Sequence record: PQ015378.1
DNA: 64,000 bases
Strand: one strand, 5' to 3'
Within the stretch, counting starts at the first letter, position 1. Every line of letters starts with the position of its first letter. Below are positions 7,374 to 53,075 of the stretch, piece after piece. A program made the position numbers and the translations under genes. Under the pieces are notes generated by a model. That model had not been told where the DNA came from and did not search any database. It worked only from the letters and a program-made list of their open reading frames with translations.

Positions 7374-7547
7374 ATGGTCGCATCCAAAGGTACTGACAAA
7401 CTCCGCCTCCTGACTGAAGCTGCACAGGAAGCAGTTCGTCGTGATCCAGCCTTGCTGGACAAGCTGGCAGAAGTCAAGCTCACCTGGCGTGAACCTCATA
7501 GCAGTGATGCCGGTCCTCTGCCGGAAGTCTGCATCCGCTTCAAGTAA
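7374..7547 (+). CDS. Small hypothetical protein (57 aa; not in ORF track), paralog of 6669-6863
   Basis: MVASKGTDKLRLLTEAAQEAVRRDPALLDKLAEVKLTWREPHSSDAGPLPEVCIRFK. Confidence 0.75.
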   Translation: MVASKGTDKLRLLTEAAQEAVRRDPALLDKLAEVKLTWREPHSSDAGPLPEVCIRFK

Positions 7548-11699: not shown

Positions 11700-11734
11700 G
11701 ACATAATGGCTTCCCTTCGGGGAAGCCTTATGCC
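11700..11734. terminator. Bidirectional hairpin terminator
   Basis: gacataat-GGCTTCCC-ttcg-GGGAAGCC-ttatgcc followed by a T run; convergent genes. Confidence 0.85.
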
Positions 11735-11745
11735 GTGTTTTTTTT

Positions 11746-13316: not shown

Positions 13317-14942
13317 TTAGGCAGTTTCTTCTTCCGACTCATCGTCACCGGCTGGTTCCATGTCCAGTTCCGATTCTTCGTCGTCATCAGTCGATTCCTC
13401 TACCAGAGGACCTTCGCCAGTTGCAGCGTCAGCGATAGCCGACTCTGCTTCACCACCGGTTGGTTCTTCCAGAGGCTGGGCTGGAGCTTCAGCAACTTCT
13501 GGTTTGAAGCGTTCAACACGGATCTGACCAGCAGCCCATGCAGCGTACAGCGAGAACAGAGCCTGAGTAGACAGTTCACGGTTGGACGGACGGACATCAC
13601 CATCAGCTTCTTGAGCGCACTGATCCATGGTGCACATGTAATCCCAGTAGGTGGACTCTGGGAAGTAGATCGAGCAGATCAGTTTGCCGAATGCCAGGAA
13701 CTCGTTGCAGAGTTGTTCTGGACGAACACCACGAATGGCGTCTTGGACTTTCTCACGCAGGCCTTCCACTTGCAGGTCACCCAGGGTACCCTGGACAGCT
13801 TGCGCGCAGAACGATTCGATCATGTCTTTCCGACGGCTACGCTCAGCGTTGTCGCTGGCGGCAGCTTGGATCAGCGGATAGACGGCCTGGAACTTCTGAA
13901 TGAAGTAAGTCTGACGCTCGGCCAGACGAGCGATGGTTTGAGTACCTTCGGTTTCCAGAGCGGAACCCAGGACCGCAGACAGATCACCACCAGCAGCTTT
14001 CCACTGTGGCTCGACGTCACCGTTCAGGTAAACGACCAGACGACGGTTCTCGATTGCATTGCTCGATTCGGAGCGCAGGATCAGAACACCGTTACGCATG
14101 TCTTCAGCACGACGCATGTAAGCACGCATTACATACGCACCCAGCATTTCGTGAAGCATGCGCAGAGTGTGATACCACTCTTCTTCGGTAACCGATTCCG
14201 CAACCACGTCGCATGGGTTCTCGGACAGGTGACCACACAGGAAGTAGGCCAGCAGCAGAGCATCGACGTTGAACGGAGCACCCTGAATGAATGGCAGTTC
14301 GCCAACAGCCAGAGCTTTGTTACGGTTGAACAGAGCCGAGTAGGTCTGCGAGATAACTTCTGGATCAACAGTCAGCAACCATTCGGTTACTTGTTCGCGC
14401 TCAGCGTGCGGGTTGTTGACAGCGACCATCTCGATGATCTCTTCCACCGACGCAGCATGCAGGATGAAGGTACGGTAGTTGGCCTGTGGGTTCACCGATG
14501 CATAGTTCTGCAGGTGAGCGGTCAGGCGAGGTTCCGAGTGGATCGGGTTGTAGCGGAAAACATCAGCACGGACGTCTGCCGAGGTCGAGGTCTGTTGACG
14601 TTCATTGAAGTCACGGACCATCGAATCGATCGCTGGGCAAACGACGTTGTTGACGTTGTACAAGATCTTGGCCAGGGCACCAGATACCAGAGAGGTCAGG
14701 TCAGCCCCAACCTCTTCTTCGGTAACAACAGCTTCGTCGTTCATTTGCTCGAAGTGTTCTTCAACAGCGGCAGTCATCTCAGGAGTGACTTCGGTGTTGG
14801 TTGGTGCTTGGTCAGGTGTGTAGCCTTGCGCAAACTGAGCCACTGGGAACTCTGGGTTTGGCACGACCAGAACTTGACTGGATTCAGTCAGTTGCTGTGC
14901 GATCAGTTTAACCGACTGCACGGTAGTGGAGATGTCAGACAT
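13317..14942 (-). CDS. Virion head protein, phiKZ gp177-like
   Basis: 541 aa with acidic C-terminal tail; synteny. Confidence 0.55.
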   Translation of the reverse strand: MSDISTTVQSVKLIAQQLTESSQVLVVPNPEFPVAQFAQGYTPDQAPTNTEVTPEMTAAVEEHFEQMNDEAVVTEEEVGADLTSLVSGALAKILYNVNNVVCPAIDSMVRDFNERQQTSTSADVRADVFRYNPIHSEPRLTAHLQNYASVNPQANYRTFILHAASVEEIIEMVAVNNPHAEREQVTEWLLTVDPEVISQTYSALFNRNKALAVGELPFIQGAPFNVDALLLAYFLCGHLSENPCDVVAESVTEEEWYHTLRMLHEMLGAYVMRAYMRRAEDMRNGVLILRSESSNAIENRRLVVYLNGDVEPQWKAAGGDLSAVLGSALETEGTQTIARLAERQTYFIQKFQAVYPLIQAAASDNAERSRRKDMIESFCAQAVQGTLGDLQVEGLREKVQDAIRGVRPEQLCNEFLAFGKLICSIYFPESTYWDYMCTMDQCAQEADGDVRPSNRELSTQALFSLYAAWAAGQIRVERFKPEVAEAPAQPLEEPTGGEAESAIADAATGEGPLVEESTDDDEESELDMEPAGDDESEEETA

Positions 14943-27300: not shown

Positions 27301-28336
27301 CTGTGCTATGGAATCCGGTTTCGACTGGACCATTAAAGCAGGGGCAGGTGGTTCGGCCACTGGTTGGTTCCAGTTCATCAACTCGACCTGGGATTGGATG
27401 CTGCAACAGCATTCCAAGAAGTACGGTATTCCACCGGACGTAGGTCGTCGTCTCCGTCTCGATCCACGTATCAACGCCCTGATGGGTGCCGAGTACATGA
27501 AGTACTCCATGCAGGTCATCAAGAAGGGTTGTGGTAAAGATCCTACCGACATCGACATCTACCTGGCTCACTTCTTGGGGCCTGGTACTGCAGTGAAGTG
27601 GTTGAAGATGCCGAAGAACACTGTGGGAGCTTACGCCTTCCCTAGAGAGGCTGCAGCTAACCCATCGATCTTCAAGGGTGGTAGAACACTCGGCCAGATC
27701 GAACAGTCGTTCGACAAACGTATGGACCAGTTCCGTGCAATGGCTTCCGCTGGTACGTCCACTGGCGCAGCGGTCCCTCTGAAAACTGAGGACGTTGAAA
27801 AGGCCACGGCAGAAGAAGCCGCCAAGAAGGCAGAAGCTGAAGCCAAGAAAGATGACAAGTTCATCCCTGGTGTATCGGCAATGCCTGGTGGTCCTTCGGT
27901 CACAGGTTCGACTCCTACCAACGCAGGTACTGGTGGCGCTACACAGCCAGGTGTAACGGGTGGTGGTGCGACTACAGCTCCGGCTGGCGGTCAAACTGCA
28001 CCAGTGGGTGTAATGGCGCCGACTCAATCGCAAACCGAGTCTCCGGACGCAGGTGCATCGAGTACGGGTGGGAACGCGTATCAACAAGCACAAGCCGCGG
28101 CACAAGCGGCAGCTGCAGCGAAAGATGCTGAACGCGCGAAGCAGGTCGGCCAGGAAACTCAAGGTGCACAGAGTATCCTGTCGATCAACCAAGAGATGTT
28201 GTCTGTACAAAAGGCACAACTCGAAGCTCTGAAGGCGCTGGTACAAGGCCAAGGGCTTGGTGGTCAGGGCAATAGTATGCCCAAGGCTTCACCCACACGG
28301 GGAGCAAACAACTCACCGTTCCCGGTGACTGTCTAA
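21317..28336 (+). CDS. Tail tape-measure / lytic transglycosylase, phiKZ gp181-like
   Basis: 2339 aa, Ala/Lys/Gly-rich helical; C-terminal SLT domain (MESGF...SATGWFQFINSTW...IYLAHFLGPG). Confidence 0.9.
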   Translation: MASNKTKLADANQKSAFDFDDDFESYFDDDFNTNKKKKPLQEFMAGFKDGLLDKNKNKSLLRAFLVNGAPKGYDRLFGAYDDLKRGATDLKDHLEKTNPGDLQYLFKRAESFLPSLKDKVSESTYDRLQSNIANKVDQYKYQIEANQDQKRVAIRRQQADDQKNMQEMLGEDLRSAVDQGTVVSQKLFNKGQQADDRRWNLDRIERGLRDQAQDKHNQYMSRGLAQAVDGITRMASYTEQVHYDFQRKGLELQFRSYIALRDMSKIAEATMDMQNKAFQALVRNTGLPDHLKSSMKDLLSMNMRQGIAQGGISMAGRSLSSFLGGYGSNVQNRVNQRASSTLSGIVQGLQTGESFSDFWDQRYNLAGGLAADAVHGGMRSYVAPMVGRMARPMMTRMSNKHGRGKHNQVGYMLDNMPAMMQEFVNNYQNSYGAKGVLQDMLRPFVPQFGLDTSTKSGSYQTIGQHTAFNQLTQRTITEILPGFQARILRELQRIRTGKEDIALTAFDITKGTWGTDKSAKDALQDRIVSKGTTRMVSGQISEALDKMDPENKLSKGARRALSERLMRDANTNKRFDPMRYGSKYGYKEGTSKETIAELESFFKEQFERDDKGKFADTAANHEKRKMYSDAFLDIRNVSRDPAAEIHRIIESGNTGMLREMGILETVEGQDRINYPMLWAMMSSQVSDTHAGDGYRYRESSGQVGDKNFVGPAFPGHASARAQNATIRFLEGPQAQRAKDAAKRGMGSAKDLMDQFRADPMQFMRDKYEAGLQGAKDKGGQLRDSAKAAADAAKAGGLPAVMEHFSAKEKLDMAKALLENTIEKEPPAMREARLKMAQALIASIDTAAEKGNQLLATETGQKAVAAGNQMLALGHDTAEQIRQSEAAGVVDLKLQEGKEVLIKATDMMQGKLIDVNTGKVIRRASDITGEVRNHLNQQVASASEVAQGLYSDRGKLMAQAREKLDSIQAVIKSTATNLAGQAKDKLDDMKDWCLEGKNEVIIKSRELLDGKYFDAESGEPIYSLDDIKGTLLDAQGRIIATGEELARGLRSMDGKKFDVPGMKEKASALAKQLWRGNTTSNILSMMGTAGSFMWKLARNTYARMTGDRDAYLPPNLKPILTVEKLKEGKYLNSKGEPYKSMGDINDSVIDADTGVALLDKGELKQLVDVNGKKHKIAKNRGLLRRMVKGAASGYWNLTKAYYRQLGKEFGMDAKAGAKTLLAPMGEFSKRQLANLSTTDQVLVQIRDAIRETVPKKNRKGSWMEKAEKKEQDAQNANGSDAKAEKERKGMFAGLTGAIGGLWDKLRGKKKDEEGDEDGEGGGILDTAQDALGTAADAKDLFGGRGGRRGRGAGRLGRMGSRIASSRVGQFVATQGGRMLATRGAMMVGTALAGLFSAPVLIGAAVVAGVGVAGYVGYKYYKSVNGELGNLRYLQYGVNGIRKRRKILALEKLLEKTAVRGQNAQLNLNADSGKEIMDIMGFSKDDEAEIHRFARWVDLRFKPVFIQWLRALDTVGQTQMSLADIDDKLDDKLKGTFLQEVQIEYGEGGPFSMRDNPFGDKEPLDDTIEETKEVFEKLKAKYKVDPEAEKKAGLPGVQPEASKDPDNVKRWEEGEAPANPAGTVVGAAATAAAKKAADEAKAVGKQGLEEKKKTAQDLSNKVNAIAKAAAVGSTAQFSNFVSNPVKLPNTTLPALDAIRMRAYGLETLDQAFVEALMTMEKSVHRQSKADQTGMIKFNGNMEYFVGACGSLLGMKTSENGPERVKFVNWMNQRFMPVCEAFLTSLRVTYRGQPDQASTQIQLGDQVRIANAIIGAQSPDSTAVWSTPSIFVIAGELQDLKRLADIDLDDLKKKAAAVLSSPTQSAGAQEAGKNAAAGGKSFLDGITDTLSGAAKATGSFISGAVDGVGSALSGAVSGIKSFFGGSSDTSSGSSYSGSQTGQDVAAVEGQQFGYIQAGNGGSWEQIPMPTAKTAKGSRATMEAVAKMVGVPVEYLMIFCAMESGFDWTIKAGAGGSATGWFQFINSTWDWMLQQHSKKYGIPPDVGRRLRLDPRINALMGAEYMKYSMQVIKKGCGKDPTDIDIYLAHFLGPGTAVKWLKMPKNTVGAYAFPREAAANPSIFKGGRTLGQIEQSFDKRMDQFRAMASAGTSTGAAVPLKTEDVEKATAEEAAKKAEAEAKKDDKFIPGVSAMPGGPSVTGSTPTNAGTGGATQPGVTGGGATTAPAGGQTAPVGVMAPTQSQTESPDAGASSTGGNAYQQAQAAAQAAAAAKDAERAKQVGQETQGAQSILSINQEMLSVQKAQLEALKALVQGQGLGGQGNSMPKASPTRGANNSPFPVTV

Positions 28337-28340
28337 CTTA

Positions 28341-28363
28341 GGGCTCTCCTTCGGGAGAGCTTT
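28341..28363 (+). terminator. Hairpin terminator
   Basis: GCTCTCC-ttcg-GGAGAGC-ttt. Confidence 0.7.
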
Positions 28364-28384
28364 ATTTCGCATCAAGGTATCAAC

Positions 28385-30917: not shown

Positions 30918-31196
30918 ATGAACAGAGAACTCACCCGGTGGATGAACTCGAACGAACAAGTTCACTACACTGAAGAAGAAATTGATCAGTTGGTCAACAA
31001 GCCACCTGACCCGCAATATGCAAAGGTTTACATCGTTGCTAACGAAACCTCTGAAGGCGGACTGAAGACGTTGATCTCAACCACGGACTTACCTACCGAT
31101 CCTAAAGAAGGAGACACGTACCAAGTACGCGATGTCTGCTGGACTTGGGCTAACGGACGGTGGATGTCGGTTGATGGTTTGTACGGTCACGTATGA
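30918..31196 (+). CDS. Hypothetical protein (92 aa)
   Basis: SD GGAGG; ends in an LP.DP..GDTY.V...W.W.NG.W motif seen in phage tail proteins. Confidence 0.7.
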   Translation: MNRELTRWMNSNEQVHYTEEEIDQLVNKPPDPQYAKVYIVANETSEGGLKTLISTTDLPTDPKEGDTYQVRDVCWTWANGRWMSVDGLYGHV

Positions 31197-31221
31197 GTTC
31201 CCTTCGGGGAGCTCTTATGCC
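31195..31221 (+). terminator. Hairpin terminator
   Basis: GAGTTCCC-ttcg-GGGAGCTC-ttatgcc. Confidence 0.75.
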
Positions 31222-31243
31222 GTTACTCTAAGAAATCTCAGAT

Positions 31244-37614: not shown

Positions 37615-37932
37615 ATGGAACTCGTTCCTTACCTTGAGTTGTTCTTCCTTCTGCTGATTGGTACAGCATTCGCCCATCGTCTGTTCGGACGACTGGATTC
37701 CGTAACCCCGAGCTGGGATGTGATTCACTACGGATTGCTCTCGGCTCTTCCTGTGTATGTAGTAACGAGTTCTGTGGCGTTGTCTCTGGCTGAGTTTGCA
37801 GCTACTTCGGTTGTCCGTTTCTTCGTGGGTGTACGCCTGCTGGACGAATCGAAAGCTCTGTGGATTGGCCTGGTGTTTAAAGCGCTGTGGGTAGCGTTGC
37901 TGGCATTCGAAATCCCCATCCTGATGGAATGA
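37615..37932 (+). CDS. Membrane protein (about 3 TM helices)
   Basis: 105 aa, hydrophobic. Confidence 0.7.
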   Translation: MELVPYLELFFLLLIGTAFAHRLFGRLDSVTPSWDVIHYGLLSALPVYVVTSSVALSLAEFAATSVVRFFVGVRLLDESKALWIGLVFKALWVALLAFEIPILME

Positions 37933-37964
37933 CATAAACGCCTCCCTTCGGGGAGGCTTTATGC
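37931..37964 (+). terminator. Hairpin terminator
   Basis: gacataaac-GCCTCCC-ttcg-GGGAGGC-tttatgc, then a T run. Confidence 0.8.
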
Positions 37965-38018
37965 TATATTTTTTTTTCGTGTTCAATGAAATGTAGTATC
38001 GGCCCCATAGGAGGGGGT

Positions 38019-42083: not shown

Positions 42084-44273
42084 CTATCGCATCCACGCCG
42101 GGACACGGTTGTTGGTTTTGGGAAGTTCAAATTGACGACGATCGATCTGGATATCCAAATGCTCGAAGCCTTTAGACAGAACACCGTACATCAGTTTATG
42201 TTCGTCGAATTCTTTCGGTTGTTCGGCGATGAAGGATTCAAAAGCTTCCTTCTGCTCAAATGGAGACTTGACACCAGTGATCGCTTCCACCATCTCTTGA
42301 GACCATGCCAAGATATCAGCACTACGTGTTGAGATATTAGGAATATCGCCAGTGTCCAGAGTAGTGGTGTATACCACTGTCTGGGAATCCTGTCCGATAC
42401 GGTAGATACGCGCAATGGCCTGCTCCAGGATATATGAACGGAATGGGTTGTTCAGGATCAACATGGTATCAGCCATGGTGAGTCGAACAGCGGTAGCCAG
42501 GGAAGCATACGTTGCTAACAGTGGGTTCAGCTTCGGTTCTTTGTCGAAACGCCCAACAATCGATGCCAGTTCGTTCGAGGTCTTACCATAGACTGCAATC
42601 GGAGTCATCCCTAGTTTGCGGGTATGCATGTCCGAAGCTTCCAGGGCTTCTACGAACGAGGTGAACATGATCGTTTTCTTGTGGGTAGATTCTACGATCC
42701 CTACCCAGTCAACGTGTGGAACCATAGCGACGTGACATTCAATACGCTTACCACCCAGGATACGACCCAGACATTCACCTTGGATCTTGAGCATCACGTA
42801 TTTGATCACAGACTTGACATCACGGAACTTGTGAATCATGGTCTGTGGCAACGAAGGACCGAATACCATCTTCTCATAGCGGTTTGTAGCCTTGATCTCT
42901 TCGCCTGTCTCTCGTGGGTCAGGGTTAGAGATAACGATCTTCAGAACGCGTCTGTATTCGTTGTAGGCGGCAATCTGCTCTTTGGTCTTGAGGGAACGTT
43001 CGTGCAGCGTGATACACTCGGCCCAATAAGCTTCATCTTCCTTACGACGATCCTGGTAATATTTCACCCGTTGTTTGATGAACTCTTCCATGACCTTCTT
43101 GATTACGGGGAGAGTAAAGTCATTACCATTCGGAATCTTGACTTTGTAGGACTTCATGATTGGTTTCTTCAAACCAGTCGAGTCCTCCGTCTTAGCGATG
43201 AAGAACGACATGTAACCCATCCGGTGCCGGATGATGTCCAGGCCTTTACCACCTTCTTTACCGTAGATCAAACGGAAGCGTGCTTCTACTTCAGGAGTGA
43301 ACAGAGGATCGGCAACAGTCATCAGCGTAATGAGCTCTGCACCCAGTGCTTTCACCGGAGTACCCGAGGCCAGTATGTTGTCCTGAGAACCGAGAGCCTT
43401 AACACACGCAATGTACATCTGTGTTTGCAGAGACTTCGGATCGTTCATGTTGTGCGATTCGTCGAGGGCGGTCATGATCTTGAGGCCATTAAACACACCG
43501 GTCTGAATCAGGTTCAGGAAGTTGGTCAGCCACTGATAGTGAACCACAACGATCTTCTCGTTGTTGTAGGGTCGACCCATCTCTGAGGACCAAACTGTAG
43601 GGGCGCTACCAGCCGTATACATCTCTTCGAGGGCGATGGTATCACTGAGGTCGTTATGATCCTCCAGTGCAACCTTAGGAGGCTCTACGTCCTCCATCGA
43701 AGGAACCCAAACAGTATTGACTGCTCGCTTCTCACAGAAGATCACAATACGGTCAGCTTTAACCATCTCACCGATGGCAGTACACATGAACGTCTTACCT
43801 GTACCTGGTTCTGCGTGCAGCAGATCGCCAGTCAAGCCCCACTTGTCGAGACGTGTAGAGTACGACTTGAAGTATTCCATCTGTTCCGCTTTCGGAGCAA
43901 ACTTCATCTTCTTCAATGCCGAGAAGTCCAGGCGCCCTGGAGCATTTGGATCTTCAGGTTGGAAGGCACGTTTCACCCAGGTGTGTTCCAGCAATCCAGC
44001 CCGGATAGCCGCAGCGGTTTTCACCGAGATGTAACGGGAGCGATAGTTCATTACGCTGTCGAGGATATAAAGGAAGTCCGGAGCGAAGAACTTGTAGAAC
44101 CGTAGCTCGGTTCGTGAAGCGTAGTTGAAAATATTAGTAGCGATACGGGAAGTCTTCCAGTACATGGAAATATCACGAACTAGGTGTAGGCCGTTGATAC
44201 CAGAGATGATGATCTCGTTACCTTGTTCTTTGACTTGGATAATCCCCGCTAGCTTTCGGAAAAAGCTGTTCAT
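42084..44273 (-). CDS. SNF2/SF2 helicase (phiKZ gp203-like)
   Basis: Walker A AEPGTGKT, DESH box, SGTP motif III, EQAIARIYRIGQ motif VI. Confidence 0.88.
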   Translation of the reverse strand: MNSFFRKLAGIIQVKEQGNEIIISGINGLHLVRDISMYWKTSRIATNIFNYASRTELRFYKFFAPDFLYILDSVMNYRSRYISVKTAAAIRAGLLEHTWVKRAFQPEDPNAPGRLDFSALKKMKFAPKAEQMEYFKSYSTRLDKWGLTGDLLHAEPGTGKTFMCTAIGEMVKADRIVIFCEKRAVNTVWVPSMEDVEPPKVALEDHNDLSDTIALEEMYTAGSAPTVWSSEMGRPYNNEKIVVVHYQWLTNFLNLIQTGVFNGLKIMTALDESHNMNDPKSLQTQMYIACVKALGSQDNILASGTPVKALGAELITLMTVADPLFTPEVEARFRLIYGKEGGKGLDIIRHRMGYMSFFIAKTEDSTGLKKPIMKSYKVKIPNGNDFTLPVIKKVMEEFIKQRVKYYQDRRKEDEAYWAECITLHERSLKTKEQIAAYNEYRRVLKIVISNPDPRETGEEIKATNRYEKMVFGPSLPQTMIHKFRDVKSVIKYVMLKIQGECLGRILGGKRIECHVAMVPHVDWVGIVESTHKKTIMFTSFVEALEASDMHTRKLGMTPIAVYGKTSNELASIVGRFDKEPKLNPLLATYASLATAVRLTMADTMLILNNPFRSYILEQAIARIYRIGQDSQTVVYTTTLDTGDIPNISTRSADILAWSQEMVEAITGVKSPFEQKEAFESFIAEQPKEFDEHKLMYGVLSKGFEHLDIQIDRRQFELPKTNNRVPAWMR

Positions 44274-44324
44274 TGTTAGAGCCTTGCTTTTATTAAGAAG
44301 TCATAAGATTAGCCCTCGTGTAAA

Positions 44325-44334
44325 GAACTACATA
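44325..44334 (-). promoter_or_regulatory. Putative late promoter for the helicase operon
   Basis: Reverse complement is TATGTAGTTC, identical to 21289-21298. Confidence 0.55.
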
Positions 44335-44348
44335 CCTGTCACAATACT

Positions 44349-44467
44349 ATAGACAAGGACCCGCGCTTAAGCGCAGTCCATGAGGAGGTGATCCAGCCCT
44401 TGCTATCCCATGAGCGTGACCATTACTGCCGGGAGGCGGCAAATGCTCATACACGTGCCTTGTCTAT
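44349..44467 (+). ncRNA. Putative structured ncRNA with a segment complementary to the 16S rRNA 3' end
   Basis: 10-bp closing stem ATAGACAAGG/CCTTGTCTAT, internal hairpins, AGGAGGTGATCCAGCC at 44383-44398, terminator downstream, no credible ORF. Confidence 0.65.
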
Positions 44468-44484
44468 TAGAGCCTGACCTCTGG

Positions 44485-44517
44485 TGGTTACCTTCGGGTA
44501 ACCATTATGTCCTTTTT
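44485..44517 (+). terminator. Intrinsic terminator closing the putative ncRNA
   Basis: TGGTTACC-ttcg-GGTAACCA-ttatgtcc-ttttt. Confidence 0.8.
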
Positions 44518-44537
44518 CAGTGCACGGAATTTCAAAT

Positions 44538-44553
44538 CTATATTACGTGCATG
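44538..44553 (+). promoter_or_regulatory. Putative early promoter
   Basis: CTATATTAC-N5-TG. Confidence 0.7.
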
Positions 44554-44576
44554 CATCCCAATCGGAGTATTTAAAC

Positions 44577-45017
44577 ATGCAACAGGAAAACAACTTCACT
44601 CTGGCACTCGGCAATATCGAAGGCAAAGCAAACTTCGGTACTGATGATGTTGAAGGTCAAGTCTTCAAAGAGTTCCCGGACCAACTGCACATTCTGGAGT
44701 CTTTCGATATCCTGACCTATGATCAGGTCTGGGACCATCTGTTCACCGACAAGTTCTTCGAGCTCACCCCATCGTCTCTCGATAACGGTATCATGGAAGC
44801 AGCCAATCAGCGCTGCGTCTATACCAACTCTGCGGACATGGAATCGGAAGTACGCATTTTCGTGACCATCTCTCTCCCAGGGCGTCTGGCACCAAACGAG
44901 AAACTGCACCTGATGCAGAACGCTGTTGCTGCTGGTTACACCATCGAACCAATCCGACTACATGGCCTGGGCGCCTGCGTCTACTCCGAGATCACCATTT
45001 CCAAGGACCCTGCGTGA
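44577..45017 (+). CDS. Hypothetical protein (146 aa)
   Basis: ATG 44577 after SD GGAG. Confidence 0.75.
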   Translation: MQQENNFTLALGNIEGKANFGTDDVEGQVFKEFPDQLHILESFDILTYDQVWDHLFTDKFFELTPSSLDNGIMEAANQRCVYTNSADMESEVRIFVTISLPGRLAPNEKLHLMQNAVAAGYTIEPIRLHGLGACVYSEITISKDPA

Positions 45018-47732: not shown

Positions 47733-48376
47733 GCCACGTTGGTGTAGTGGCGGGAGTCGGTTCACGCACTGTGCCAGAGTGGGCACTCGAACTCATGATC
47801 CGTATAGGGAGAACTTATACGGACCTGGGTTATCAAATGTCATCAGGGGACGCATGGGATTCAGACCGTGCGTTCCTTTATGGCGCAGCGCAGTCGAAGC
47901 GATACCACGAAGTTGGCGCCCGTGTCTTTCTAGCGAAGGATGGTGATAATGGTCGCTGGGTAAAAGACAATCCGTTTTACTACGATGCAGAACTGGCCGA
48001 TCCTGATTCTGCATCTATGGCTCGTTCGATGGCATTCAATGCACGGGGTAGTTTCTACAACCTCGGGGAGAAAGGTATCAAGTTGCACATCCGCAACGTA
48101 TACCAGATCCATGACATTGATCTAACCGAACTGGTCTGTGCTATCTACTTGTACGCCGAACCCAACGGTAAGTCGAAGGTGCATGGCGGAACCAACACCG
48201 CGCTCCAGATTGCGAAAGCAGCTGAAGTGCCAATCATCAAAAACCTGTACTTCCAATCCACAGTTGACGAGATAGAAGCATGGCTTGCTGAACACGAGCA
48301 GGACTATCCTTACATCGATATCGACTGGACCCAAATTCATAGACCGGATGATCCCCGGTTGCAGGAGTTCGAATGA
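47729..48376 (+). CDS. SLOG/DprA-like protein
   Basis: AGVGSR.VP...LELM..I......GY...SGDA.DSD.AF and GGT..A pattern; start uncertain (ATA 47729 or GTG 47747). Confidence 0.65.
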   Translation: MSHVGVVAGVGSRTVPEWALELMIRIGRTYTDLGYQMSSGDAWDSDRAFLYGAAQSKRYHEVGARVFLAKDGDNGRWVKDNPFYYDAELADPDSASMARSMAFNARGSFYNLGEKGIKLHIRNVYQIHDIDLTELVCAIYLYAEPNGKSKVHGGTNTALQIAKAAEVPIIKNLYFQSTVDEIEAWLAEHEQDYPYIDIDWTQIHRPDDPRLQEFE

Positions 48377-49011
48377 AAAAGCTCTGGAATCGTTTTCTGG
48401 TTGCCATTGGCTTCCGTAAACCCAATCCCCACAACATGTCCGCTCAAGATATCAGCCTGGGGGAAGTTCCCAATCCCAGTCCCATCGCTGGCGCCCCTGA
48501 AGTCTTTCGTACAACCCCAGCCGAGCGAGGACCCCTCGAACTACCACGCTCTACCACCCGGCGGGTTGTTACACCTCCCCGCTTCAGTGGTGGCGACAGC
48601 CGTTCACGTCCACTACCTGCAAGTTATGGCAGACAGGCGTCGCCGTCCTCGAACAGTAACAGTCAGGTACAACGGGACGGGCGACCCGATGACCTACTGG
48701 ACGGACTTACTGCATTCGTCGTGGCAAGCGCATTGCTTGGCGGAGACGAAGAGAAAGCAGCGGTACCAGAGTCTCGGCCTGTTATAGCGGAAGAAACCTC
48801 TACCAGCTACCAAGAACAAATCACTCAGAACCAGCGGGAGTATTCCAACCGTTGGGCCGAAGCACAACGTCCTGAACCGGTATCGCGTACCACCAGCTTC
48901 GATGACGATCGTTCAGCCAGCTACGGTAGTGGCAGTGGTTCGGACAACAACCGCAGTAATGATTTGCCATCCTCTTCGTGGGATGGTGGTGGTTCCAGCT
49001 GGGACGACTGA
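48373..49011 (+). CDS. Low-complexity protein with Ser/Gly/Asp-rich C-terminus
   Basis: ATGA overlap; ends SSSWDGGGSSWDD. Confidence 0.7.
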   Translation: MKKLWNRFLVAIGFRKPNPHNMSAQDISLGEVPNPSPIAGAPEVFRTTPAERGPLELPRSTTRRVVTPPRFSGGDSRSRPLPASYGRQASPSSNSNSQVQRDGRPDDLLDGLTAFVVASALLGGDEEKAAVPESRPVIAEETSTSYQEQITQNQREYSNRWAEAQRPEPVSRTTSFDDDRSASYGSGSGSDNNRSNDLPSSSWDGGGSSWDD

Positions 49012-49018
49012 ATAAACC

Positions 49019-49040
49019 GGCTCCCTTCGGGGAGCCTTTT
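49019..49040 (+). terminator. Intrinsic terminator
   Basis: GGCTCCC-ttcg-GGGAGCC-tttt. Confidence 0.8.
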
Positions 49041-49059
49041 GCCCTTAAGAGGAAACGAA

Positions 49060-50023: not shown

Positions 50024-53011
<2,988 letters not shown>

Positions 53012-53013
<2 letters not shown>

Positions 53014-53045
53014 CATAGAGCGGGCCTTCGGGCCCGCCTTATGCC
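53012..53045 (+). terminator. Hairpin terminator
   Basis: gacata..GCGGGCC-ttcg-GGCCCGC-cttatgcc, then a T-rich tract. Confidence 0.8.
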
Positions 53046-53075
53046 GTTTTCTTTTTATTCAAAACGATTAGAAAC

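Follow-up and report, generated by a model that had tools for sequence, protein, structure and literature searches.

A conserved structured RNA of phiKZ-like phages with a core complementary to the 3′ tail of Pseudomonas 16S ribosomal RNA

The last 64 kb of the Pseudomonas phage RVTF4 record (PQ015378.1, 302.5 kb), here called the window, carry a structured element of ~160 nucleotides (nt) on the + strand (44349–44505), between the gene for an SNF2-family helicase and the next operon. Comparison with related genomes shows that the element represents a new family of conserved, structured RNAs in phiKZ-like phages, and that its least variable part is complementary to the 3′ tail of Pseudomonas 16S ribosomal RNA (rRNA). 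We tentatively propose that the element encodes a separately transcribed RNA that may pair with this tail and occupy it as a decoy message. An earlier note on this DNA had proposed an RNA of this kind; its structured noncoding RNA, terminator, 16S-complementary stretch, and lack of a dependent open reading frame (ORF) hold up, while the opening of 16S helix 45 that it also proposed is not a conserved requirement. Window positions 44200–44650 correspond to RVTF4 positions 282737–283187 at 100% identity, and the gap holding the element, 303 nt in length, is the largest annotated intergenic gap between window positions 14001 and 64000, as the note had stated for the window.

The 16-nt sequence AGGAGGTGATCCAGCC (44383–44398) occurs once in the window, even when two mismatches are allowed. 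It is the exact reverse complement of 16S nucleotides −18 to −3 of Pseudomonas sp. B22129, whose rRNA operon was located with the window 16-mer and whose 16S 3′ end was set by the Rfam small-subunit rRNA model. With the preceding TG, the complementary stretch (44381–44398) covers all 18 terminal nucleotides of this 16S rRNA (GGCTGGATCACCTCCTTA), with one G·U pair, just as the note had described. The E. coli 16S rRNA differs at one base (GGTTGG versus GGCTGG), in keeping with the note's CAGCC for Pseudomonas and CAACC for enterobacteria. Among 16 diverged copies of the element, only two runs of at least five columns are invariant: GGTGATCCA (44387–44395) and TTATG (44505–44509), the latter of which is not specific to the element. 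GGTGATCCA sits inside a 13-nt core, AGGRGGTGATCCA (44383–44395), as AGG-R-GGTGATCCA, in which one A/G position is the sole variation. No other part of the element is as well conserved in these 16 copies as the 16S-complementary stretch, and loss of this stretch with retention of its flanks, a concern raised in the note, was not seen. The core has no covariation-supported partner within the RNA, and two small helices (5 and 6) predicted inside the complementary stretch never covary.

Every copy can form an unbroken helix of 14–21 bp with the Pseudomonas 16S 3′ end, as computed from complementarity, in which the 13-nt core is flanked by 1–8 further complementary bases. Duplex energies for the core and its flanks against the 16S end range from −25 to −37 kcal/mol. 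The core matches 16S nucleotides −15 to −3, which take in the 13-nt free tail, except for its final two bases, and also the two terminal base pairs of helix 45 (limits of helix 45 taken from a fold of the last 45 nt of 16S). The helix is longest, at 19–21 bp, in phiKZ, the Psa21 clade (Psa21 and the loci L141, L142, and L139), HPP-Temi, and L124, where it runs 1–3 bp past the CAGYC block shared with RVTF4. Substitutions in the region that pairs with 16S −18 to −2 mostly preserve the pair, being exchanges of A and G facing U or of C and U facing G; the exceptions are the unpaired 3′ extension of Phabio and a C opposite −2 in Noxifer. Chance is excluded as the source of the match by conservation of the motif across phage genera, and not only by the statistics of the 16-mer. 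Freeing 14 nt of the 16S tail costs ~2.5 kcal/mol and freeing 18 nt ~12 kcal/mol; the energy gained by extending into helix 45 thus about equals the cost. Such extension amounts to six bases in phiKZ, three in RVTF4, and none in Phabio. This variability indicates that the opening of helix 45, which had been claimed for the RNA, is not a conserved requirement. Elsewhere in the window, the second-longest match to the tail complement is the 11-nt GTGATCCAGCC at 7441–7451 (+), which lacks the Shine-Dalgarno part and is probably due to chance.

The structure of the element is supported by covariation. In an alignment of the 16 sequences (alignment A5), whose fitting to a covariance model inflates pairing statistics somewhat, 89.7% of alignment cells form standard pairs, as compared to 36–42% when partners are slid by one to three columns. 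Changes on both sides occur in 31 of the 42 base pairs, values not reached in any of 500 shuffles, and the stem covariation that the note had suggested checking is thus present. Compensatory change is also visible in the raw sequence, with the closing stem being ATAGACAAGG/CCTTGTCTAT in RVTF4 and TGTGCAAGG/CCTTGCACA in Noxifer. The supported architecture is a three-way junction formed by a closing stem (P1), a hairpin (P2), and an arm (P3) with an inner hairpin (P3a), followed by a variable hairpin (P4) and a terminator hairpin. The stems, the GCGC hairpin, and the hairpin with a GNRA-type cap all lie where the note had placed them.

The 5′ strand of P1 (44349–44358) forms 10 bp with its 3′ strand (44458–44467) and shows compensatory changes, with A:U, U:A, C:G, and G:C all occurring at one pair position. 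P2 (44363–44374, GCGC-TTAA-GCGC) is 100% paired, with both-side changes in three of its four pairs. The P3 arm (44410–44450) has an outer stem made up of ATGAGC (44410–44415) and GCTCAT (44445–44450), and its inner hairpin P3a (44426–44439, CTGCC-GGGA-GGCGG) is capped by a GNGA tetraloop (44431–44434); all 13 of the P3/P3a pairs have both-side changes. The P3a loop is GAGA, GGGA, GTGA, or GCGA in 14 of the 16 copies. The junction between P3 and P1 (44451–44457) reads ACACGTG in RVTF4 and AACTACG in most relatives. P4 (44468–44483) is short and variable, being longer in the phiKZ and 201phi2-1 clade. The terminator hairpin (44484–44505), identified by a terminator scan, has a UUCG loop (44493–44496), both-side changes in seven of nine pairs, and T-rich sequence after it, in line with the terminator that the note had described. 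The + strand, likewise proposed there, is indicated by 41 G·U cells, by the occurrence of all four nucleotides at N of the G-N-G-A loop of P3a, and by terminator loops of UUCG or UGCG. An RNA from the minus strand was rejected on the strength of these same features.

A second complementarity to 16S, between AACUACG..CCUUG of the element and the 5′ strand of helix 45, emerged from a duplex search and was rejected as inconsistent among clades. Against dinucleotide shuffles it is significant by energy only in PhiPA3 and HPP-Temi, and by local alignment its best site falls in different columns in each clade (p from 0.004 to 0.6). The junction AACUACG along with the P1 3′ strand (44449–44465, columns 154–177 of the alignment) is partly complementary to the helix 45 5′ strand in phiKZ, HPP-Temi, PhiPA3, and L124, but not in RVTF4.

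The element is bounded by putative transcription signals. A promoter-like region (44322–44348, +) contains an A-rich stretch ending in TAC (44322–44331), located ~20 nt upstream of RATRNTATAG (44343–44352). The A-rich…TAC block is found at the same distance (~20 nt before TATAG) in 15 of 15 non-Noxifer homologues, whatever lies upstream, and is replaced in Noxifer by TATG, the late-promoter motif. Middle promoters of phiKZ have a weak AT-rich motif centred at −24, and its late promoters have the motif T−3 A T G+1 (PMC7598289). We read the A-rich block as a putative promoter, as it fits the middle-promoter motif at −24. These signals point to an independent transcription unit that would start at or just before P1, with the RNA 5′ end probably falling within the region of the P1 5′ strand (44349–44358).

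At the other end, the UUCG hairpin is joined to TTATG-Y-C(-G-T), and this module recurs at least seven times in the window. Copies are located at 1879–1925 (−), 11700–11743 (+), and 53010–53054 (+), and within 31170–31230, 48958–49052, 28268–28377, and 37869–37974. The module looks like a standard terminator fused to a late promoter, which would end one transcript and start the next. Its recurrence, along with the identity of TATG to the phiKZ late motif, leads us to regard the hairpin of the element as the standard terminator of the phage. The TATG following the element (44506–44509, +), a sequence match to the late-promoter motif for the downstream operon, is invariant in 16 of 16 copies and lies outside the RNA-specific core. 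Further downstream is the early-promoter motif CTATATTAC (44538–44546, +), also for the downstream operon and conserved in most relatives. Four exact copies of CTATATTAC occur in the window, all on the + strand (5709, 6883, 44538, and 53076), and the motif matches the AT-rich early-promoter type of phiKZ-like phages. On the other side of the element, the helicase gene has its own TATG late-promoter motif (44302–44305, −), within a block upstream of the helicase start that is conserved in RVTF4, D6, Psa21, and phiKZ. In every genomic context, the element has the promoter-like block upstream and the terminator downstream.

The family is present in all sampled Pseudomonas phiKZ-like lineages, namely phiKZ, PhiPA3, 201phi2-1, HPP-Temi, Psa21, D6, Phabio, Noxifer, and metagenomic relatives. 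In D6 and Psa21 the element occurs at the same place as in RVTF4 and is conserved better than the flanking gene ends. A first covariance model, built from the copies of RVTF4, D6, and Psa21, matched phiKZ (between PHIKZ203 and PHIKZ204, in the interval 212845–213048 of AF399011, +), PhiPA3, 201phi2-1, HPP-Temi, and several 300-kb viral contigs with E-values of 1e-9 to 1e-18; a second model additionally recovered Phabio and Noxifer. The note's expectation that the element could be looked for beside the helicase in related jumbo phages is therefore borne out, for example in D6, Psa21, and phiKZ, and the element persists among phages whose helicases are as little as 47–57% identical. With the phiKZ copy alone as query, 57 GenBank phage records match, every one of them from a Pseudomonas phage, and among the matches listed no annotated record has a feature under the match. 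In HPP-Temi, three tiny ORFs annotated as hypothetical proteins (CDS0187–0189) are called across the element on the opposite strand (locus L133, 2577–2995), and these are probably spurious calls over a noncoding RNA.

No copy was found within 8–20 kb of the helicase in Erwinia phage Ea35-70, Xanthomonas phage RTH11, Ralstonia phage RP12, Burkholderia phage FLC9, or Pseudomonas phage EL. From the genomes covered, the family appears to be a feature of the Pseudomonas phiKZ-like clade, whose members have a helicase at least ~47% identical to that of RVTF4. A metagenome scan gave 28 pattern matches, only four of which are family members, and a plain 15-mer scan gave mostly chance or unrelated matches. 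Chance hits also dominated a scan of viral contigs for an enterobacterial-type tail complement, and among the matches listed none is on a contig of jumbo-phage size. Searches of known families gave no relative: Rfam 15 had no matches at the gathering score over the whole window and none up to E = 10 with permissive filters over 44250–44600, and ARAGORN found no transfer RNA (tRNA) or transfer-messenger RNA genes over 44000–44800.

How the phage's own genes use the 16S tail bears on function. For the 58 annotated RVTF4 genes in window positions 14001–64000, the longest exact match to the tail complement upstream of a start is 7 nt. Shine-Dalgarno pairing is nevertheless enriched among them, with 52% reaching −6 kcal/mol as compared to 26% of random windows. 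Ordinary Shine-Dalgarno sites have the same partner as the element, the 16S 3′ tail, and the same core (AGGAGG or AGGGGG). The element differs from them in its helix of 14–21 bp, versus 3–7 nt at the 58 RVTF4 genes, in having no start codon after its motif, and in carrying the motif in the junction of a terminated, structured small RNA. A helix of at least 13 bp would exceed by far the stability of every natural Shine-Dalgarno interaction in RVTF4.

The simplest account of an invariant, partnerless stretch that coincides end to end with the free 16S tail is that the RNA pairs with this tail. From sequence features we infer transcription from the element's own promoter, binding to 16S rRNA, and an effect on translation, of which ribosome binding is the best supported. 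In the account that we favor, though tentatively, the RNA would hybridize to the 16S 3′ tail on 30S subunits or 70S ribosomes and act like a message that has an excessively long Shine-Dalgarno sequence but lacks a start codon. By occupying the anti-Shine-Dalgarno sequence, the bound RNA would prevent the subunit from starting on ordinary messages led by a Shine-Dalgarno sequence.

Several points weigh against this account. The Shine-Dalgarno use of the phage's own genes argues against a simple global sponge, as blanket blocking of the anti-Shine-Dalgarno sequence would hurt the phage as well. A translation block would need many copies of the RNA per cell. Single-sequence folding gives the core a mean unpaired probability of only 0.35–0.60, even when the supported helices are imposed as constraints. 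Every host is a Pseudomonas and has one and the same tail, which leaves no variation in the target against which changes in the RNA could be compared, and CAGCC would pair with the E. coli tail as well, through a G·U. Lastly, the main texts of the phiKZ Grad-seq and dRNA-seq papers do not mention the locus. The Grad-seq study described two phage small RNAs at other loci and sought RNAs that do not run with ribosomes (PMC8545117), a design that would have overlooked any RNA bound to 30S subunits. Supplementary tables of the ONT-cappable-seq studies contain 17 candidates for phiKZ and 11 for 201phi2-1, and the element may be among them.

An alternative with the same docking is that the RNA serves as a ribosome-anchored scaffold or adaptor, which brings something to the ribosome instead of blocking it. 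P2 and the GNGA-capped P3 might bind a phage protein or message, or hold 30S subunits near the phage nucleus. This possibility, which we consider unlikely, ranks second because the junction arms are conserved and because phage genes need the anti-Shine-Dalgarno sequence, with which a non-inhibitory role agrees better. Compensatory changes maintain the arms, and the GNGA loop is likewise retained; a bare decoy would need less structure. In addition, phiKZ messages and phage tRNAs co-sediment with ribosomes (PMC8545117), and a nucleus-associated RNA-binding protein binds small unannotated PhiPA3 RNAs, although its peaks are at other loci (PMC11077065). Speaking against a scaffold, no partner was found: only the helicase is conserved among the neighbors, and the downstream proteins have no informative family match.

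The element could instead act in cis as a 30S loading or stabilizing site, protecting or priming transcripts that read through into the downstream operon. The precedent is provided by the STAB-SD and polypurine 5′ stabilizers of Bacillus (Agaisse and Lereclus 1996; Hue et al. 1995, as cited in PMC3997798 and PMC4113751), which in these citing accounts are Shine-Dalgarno-like sequences that, like the element, serve no ORF or start codon, are thought to bind 30S subunits, and stabilize messages. In most relatives the element is indeed followed by an operon on its own strand, and premature termination within 5′ leaders gives rise to many of the phiKZ small RNAs (PMC10914365). STAB-SD sequences, however, head a message that runs on into a gene and protect it from a Gram-positive 5′ exonuclease, whereas the element is a three-way junction in phages of a Gram-negative host and is separated from the operon by a strong, covarying terminator and two promoters (TATG and CTATATTAC). 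The start codon of the operon is ~180 nt away, and the downstream gene varies between phages, being the helicase itself in PhiPA3. A role of this type seems improbable.

We hold it equally doubtful that the core is a site for a protein or another RNA, with the 16S match a by-product, such as an old captured antisense fragment of an rRNA operon. One tail is common to all hosts, and conservation of the core could accordingly have another cause; the moderate thermodynamic accessibility of the core would also be easier to reconcile with such a reading. Yet invariant block and free 16S tail match from one end to the other, and most variable flanking positions change only in ways that keep the pair. 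The A/G switch inside the core destroys the GGA needed by CsrA/RsmA-type proteins, and no complementary site occurs elsewhere in the 64-kb window, even at two mismatches.

It is no more probable that the RNA is something beyond a decoy, either a bipartite antisense RNA that invades helix 45 or an adaptor. A bipartite RNA would be antisense to the whole 3′ minor domain of 16S, starting on the tail, strand-invading helix 45, and remodeling the platform; its basis is the 21-bp helix of phiKZ and the second, colinear helix 45 match in some clades. An adaptor would supply the Shine-Dalgarno sequence in trans, or tether 30S subunits to the phage nucleus, such that ribosomes would be dedicated to phage messages.

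Least probable by far is that the stretch is the ribosome-binding site of a short unannotated ORF, for which RVTF4 offers a TTG at +11 (25 codons) and the ATG at 44410 (54 codons), or a DNA-level signal, since neither a start codon nor a frame is conserved and the compensatory changes, including G·U pairs, indicate RNA. The short-ORF reading was rejected on its start codons and frames. In 11 of the 16 copies there is no ATG, GTG, or TTG at +3 to +15 after the core, and the other five have non-ATG starts at a spacing of 11–14 nt, opening unconserved frames of 3–25 codons. The nearest ATG in RVTF4 is 21 nt after GGAGG, exactly as noted earlier, and the ATG at 44410 is absent from Psa21.

Returning to the decoy, we compared it with other RNAs and proteins that act on ribosomes or messages. 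The element resembles base-pairing small RNAs of bacteria and phages in size, in having a conserved seed without an internal partner, and in its 3′ terminator hairpin, but its predicted target is an rRNA rather than a message. A valine tRNA fragment of Haloferax (PMC6104027, PMC11009984) is likewise a small RNA on the small subunit with a global effect on translation; RNAs of this type are processed fragments near the decoding site, whereas the element is a dedicated phage gene with predicted Watson-Crick pairing to the tail. In Bacteroidetes, ribosomal proteins occlude the anti-Shine-Dalgarno sequence (PMC7797042). The principle is the same, but the agents there are host proteins acting constitutively, and here it would be a phage RNA acting during infection. 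Within the same phage group, phiKZ proteins such as PhiKZ014 (PMC10914614) also take hold of host ribosomes. These proteins are made in the first minutes and are found mostly on the 50S subunit, whereas the element would be an RNA with the 30S subunit as its target and has a promoter signal of the middle or late type.

Other small RNAs have been reported in phiKZ-like phages, including the gp182 5′ leader and 201phi2-1 sRNA005, PHIKZ298/297, and the p40 leader (PMC11512511, PMC10914365, PMC8545117). They are likewise unannotated and conserved, but are encoded elsewhere in the genome, and complementarity to 16S has been reported for none of them. A 2026 review of jumbo phages makes no mention of an RNA like the element, and a full-text literature search for the motif letters returned nothing relevant. 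The earlier statement that no such system has been described therefore agrees with what we found in Rfam and in the literature searched, where no small RNA with the 16S tail as its target is described.

The syntenic neighbor of the element is the SNF2-family helicase (42084–44273, −), a homologue of phiKZ gp203 with 52% identity. It is labelled "Type III restriction enzyme res subunit" in the RVTF4 record, and its homologues in relatives are named SNF2-domain helicase, DarB-like antirestriction protein, or structural protein. The helicase match is split in two, over ~2.9–3.1 kb as compared to 2.1 kb, in PA1C, phiHQ, phiLBG22, BRkr, PS119XW, HHBS36_1, PhiPA3, and SL2, which suggests an insertion in the gene of the intron, intein, or homing-endonuclease type. 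On the other side, the first gene of the downstream operon (44577–45017, +) encodes a protein of 146 amino acids with no family match, and a comparison of the downstream proteins with PHROGs gave nothing informative. The operon just downstream of the phiKZ element encodes gp206 (PHIKZ206; locus L131, 724–1434, −), which is reported to co-sediment with 50S subunits (PMC10914614). A tblastn search of the RVTF4 window detected a homologue of gp207 (47738–48370) but none of gp206.

Phages are known to seize ribosomes by means of proteins. A phage or bacterial small RNA that targets the anti-Shine-Dalgarno tail of 16S rRNA is, in the literature searched, undescribed. Conservation of the element extends over the best-studied nucleus-forming jumbo phages. 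Among them is the model phage phiKZ, whose transcripts have been mapped and for which gradient profiles and structures of ribosomes are available, and the question of the element's function could thus be answered largely from deposited data. Docking of the RNA on the 30S subunit, if confirmed, would constitute a new viral way to control host translation and provide a natural example of a very long Shine-Dalgarno helix. Even with another function, the element defines a new and well-supported family of structured RNAs, in a group of phages used for therapy research, and merits annotation.

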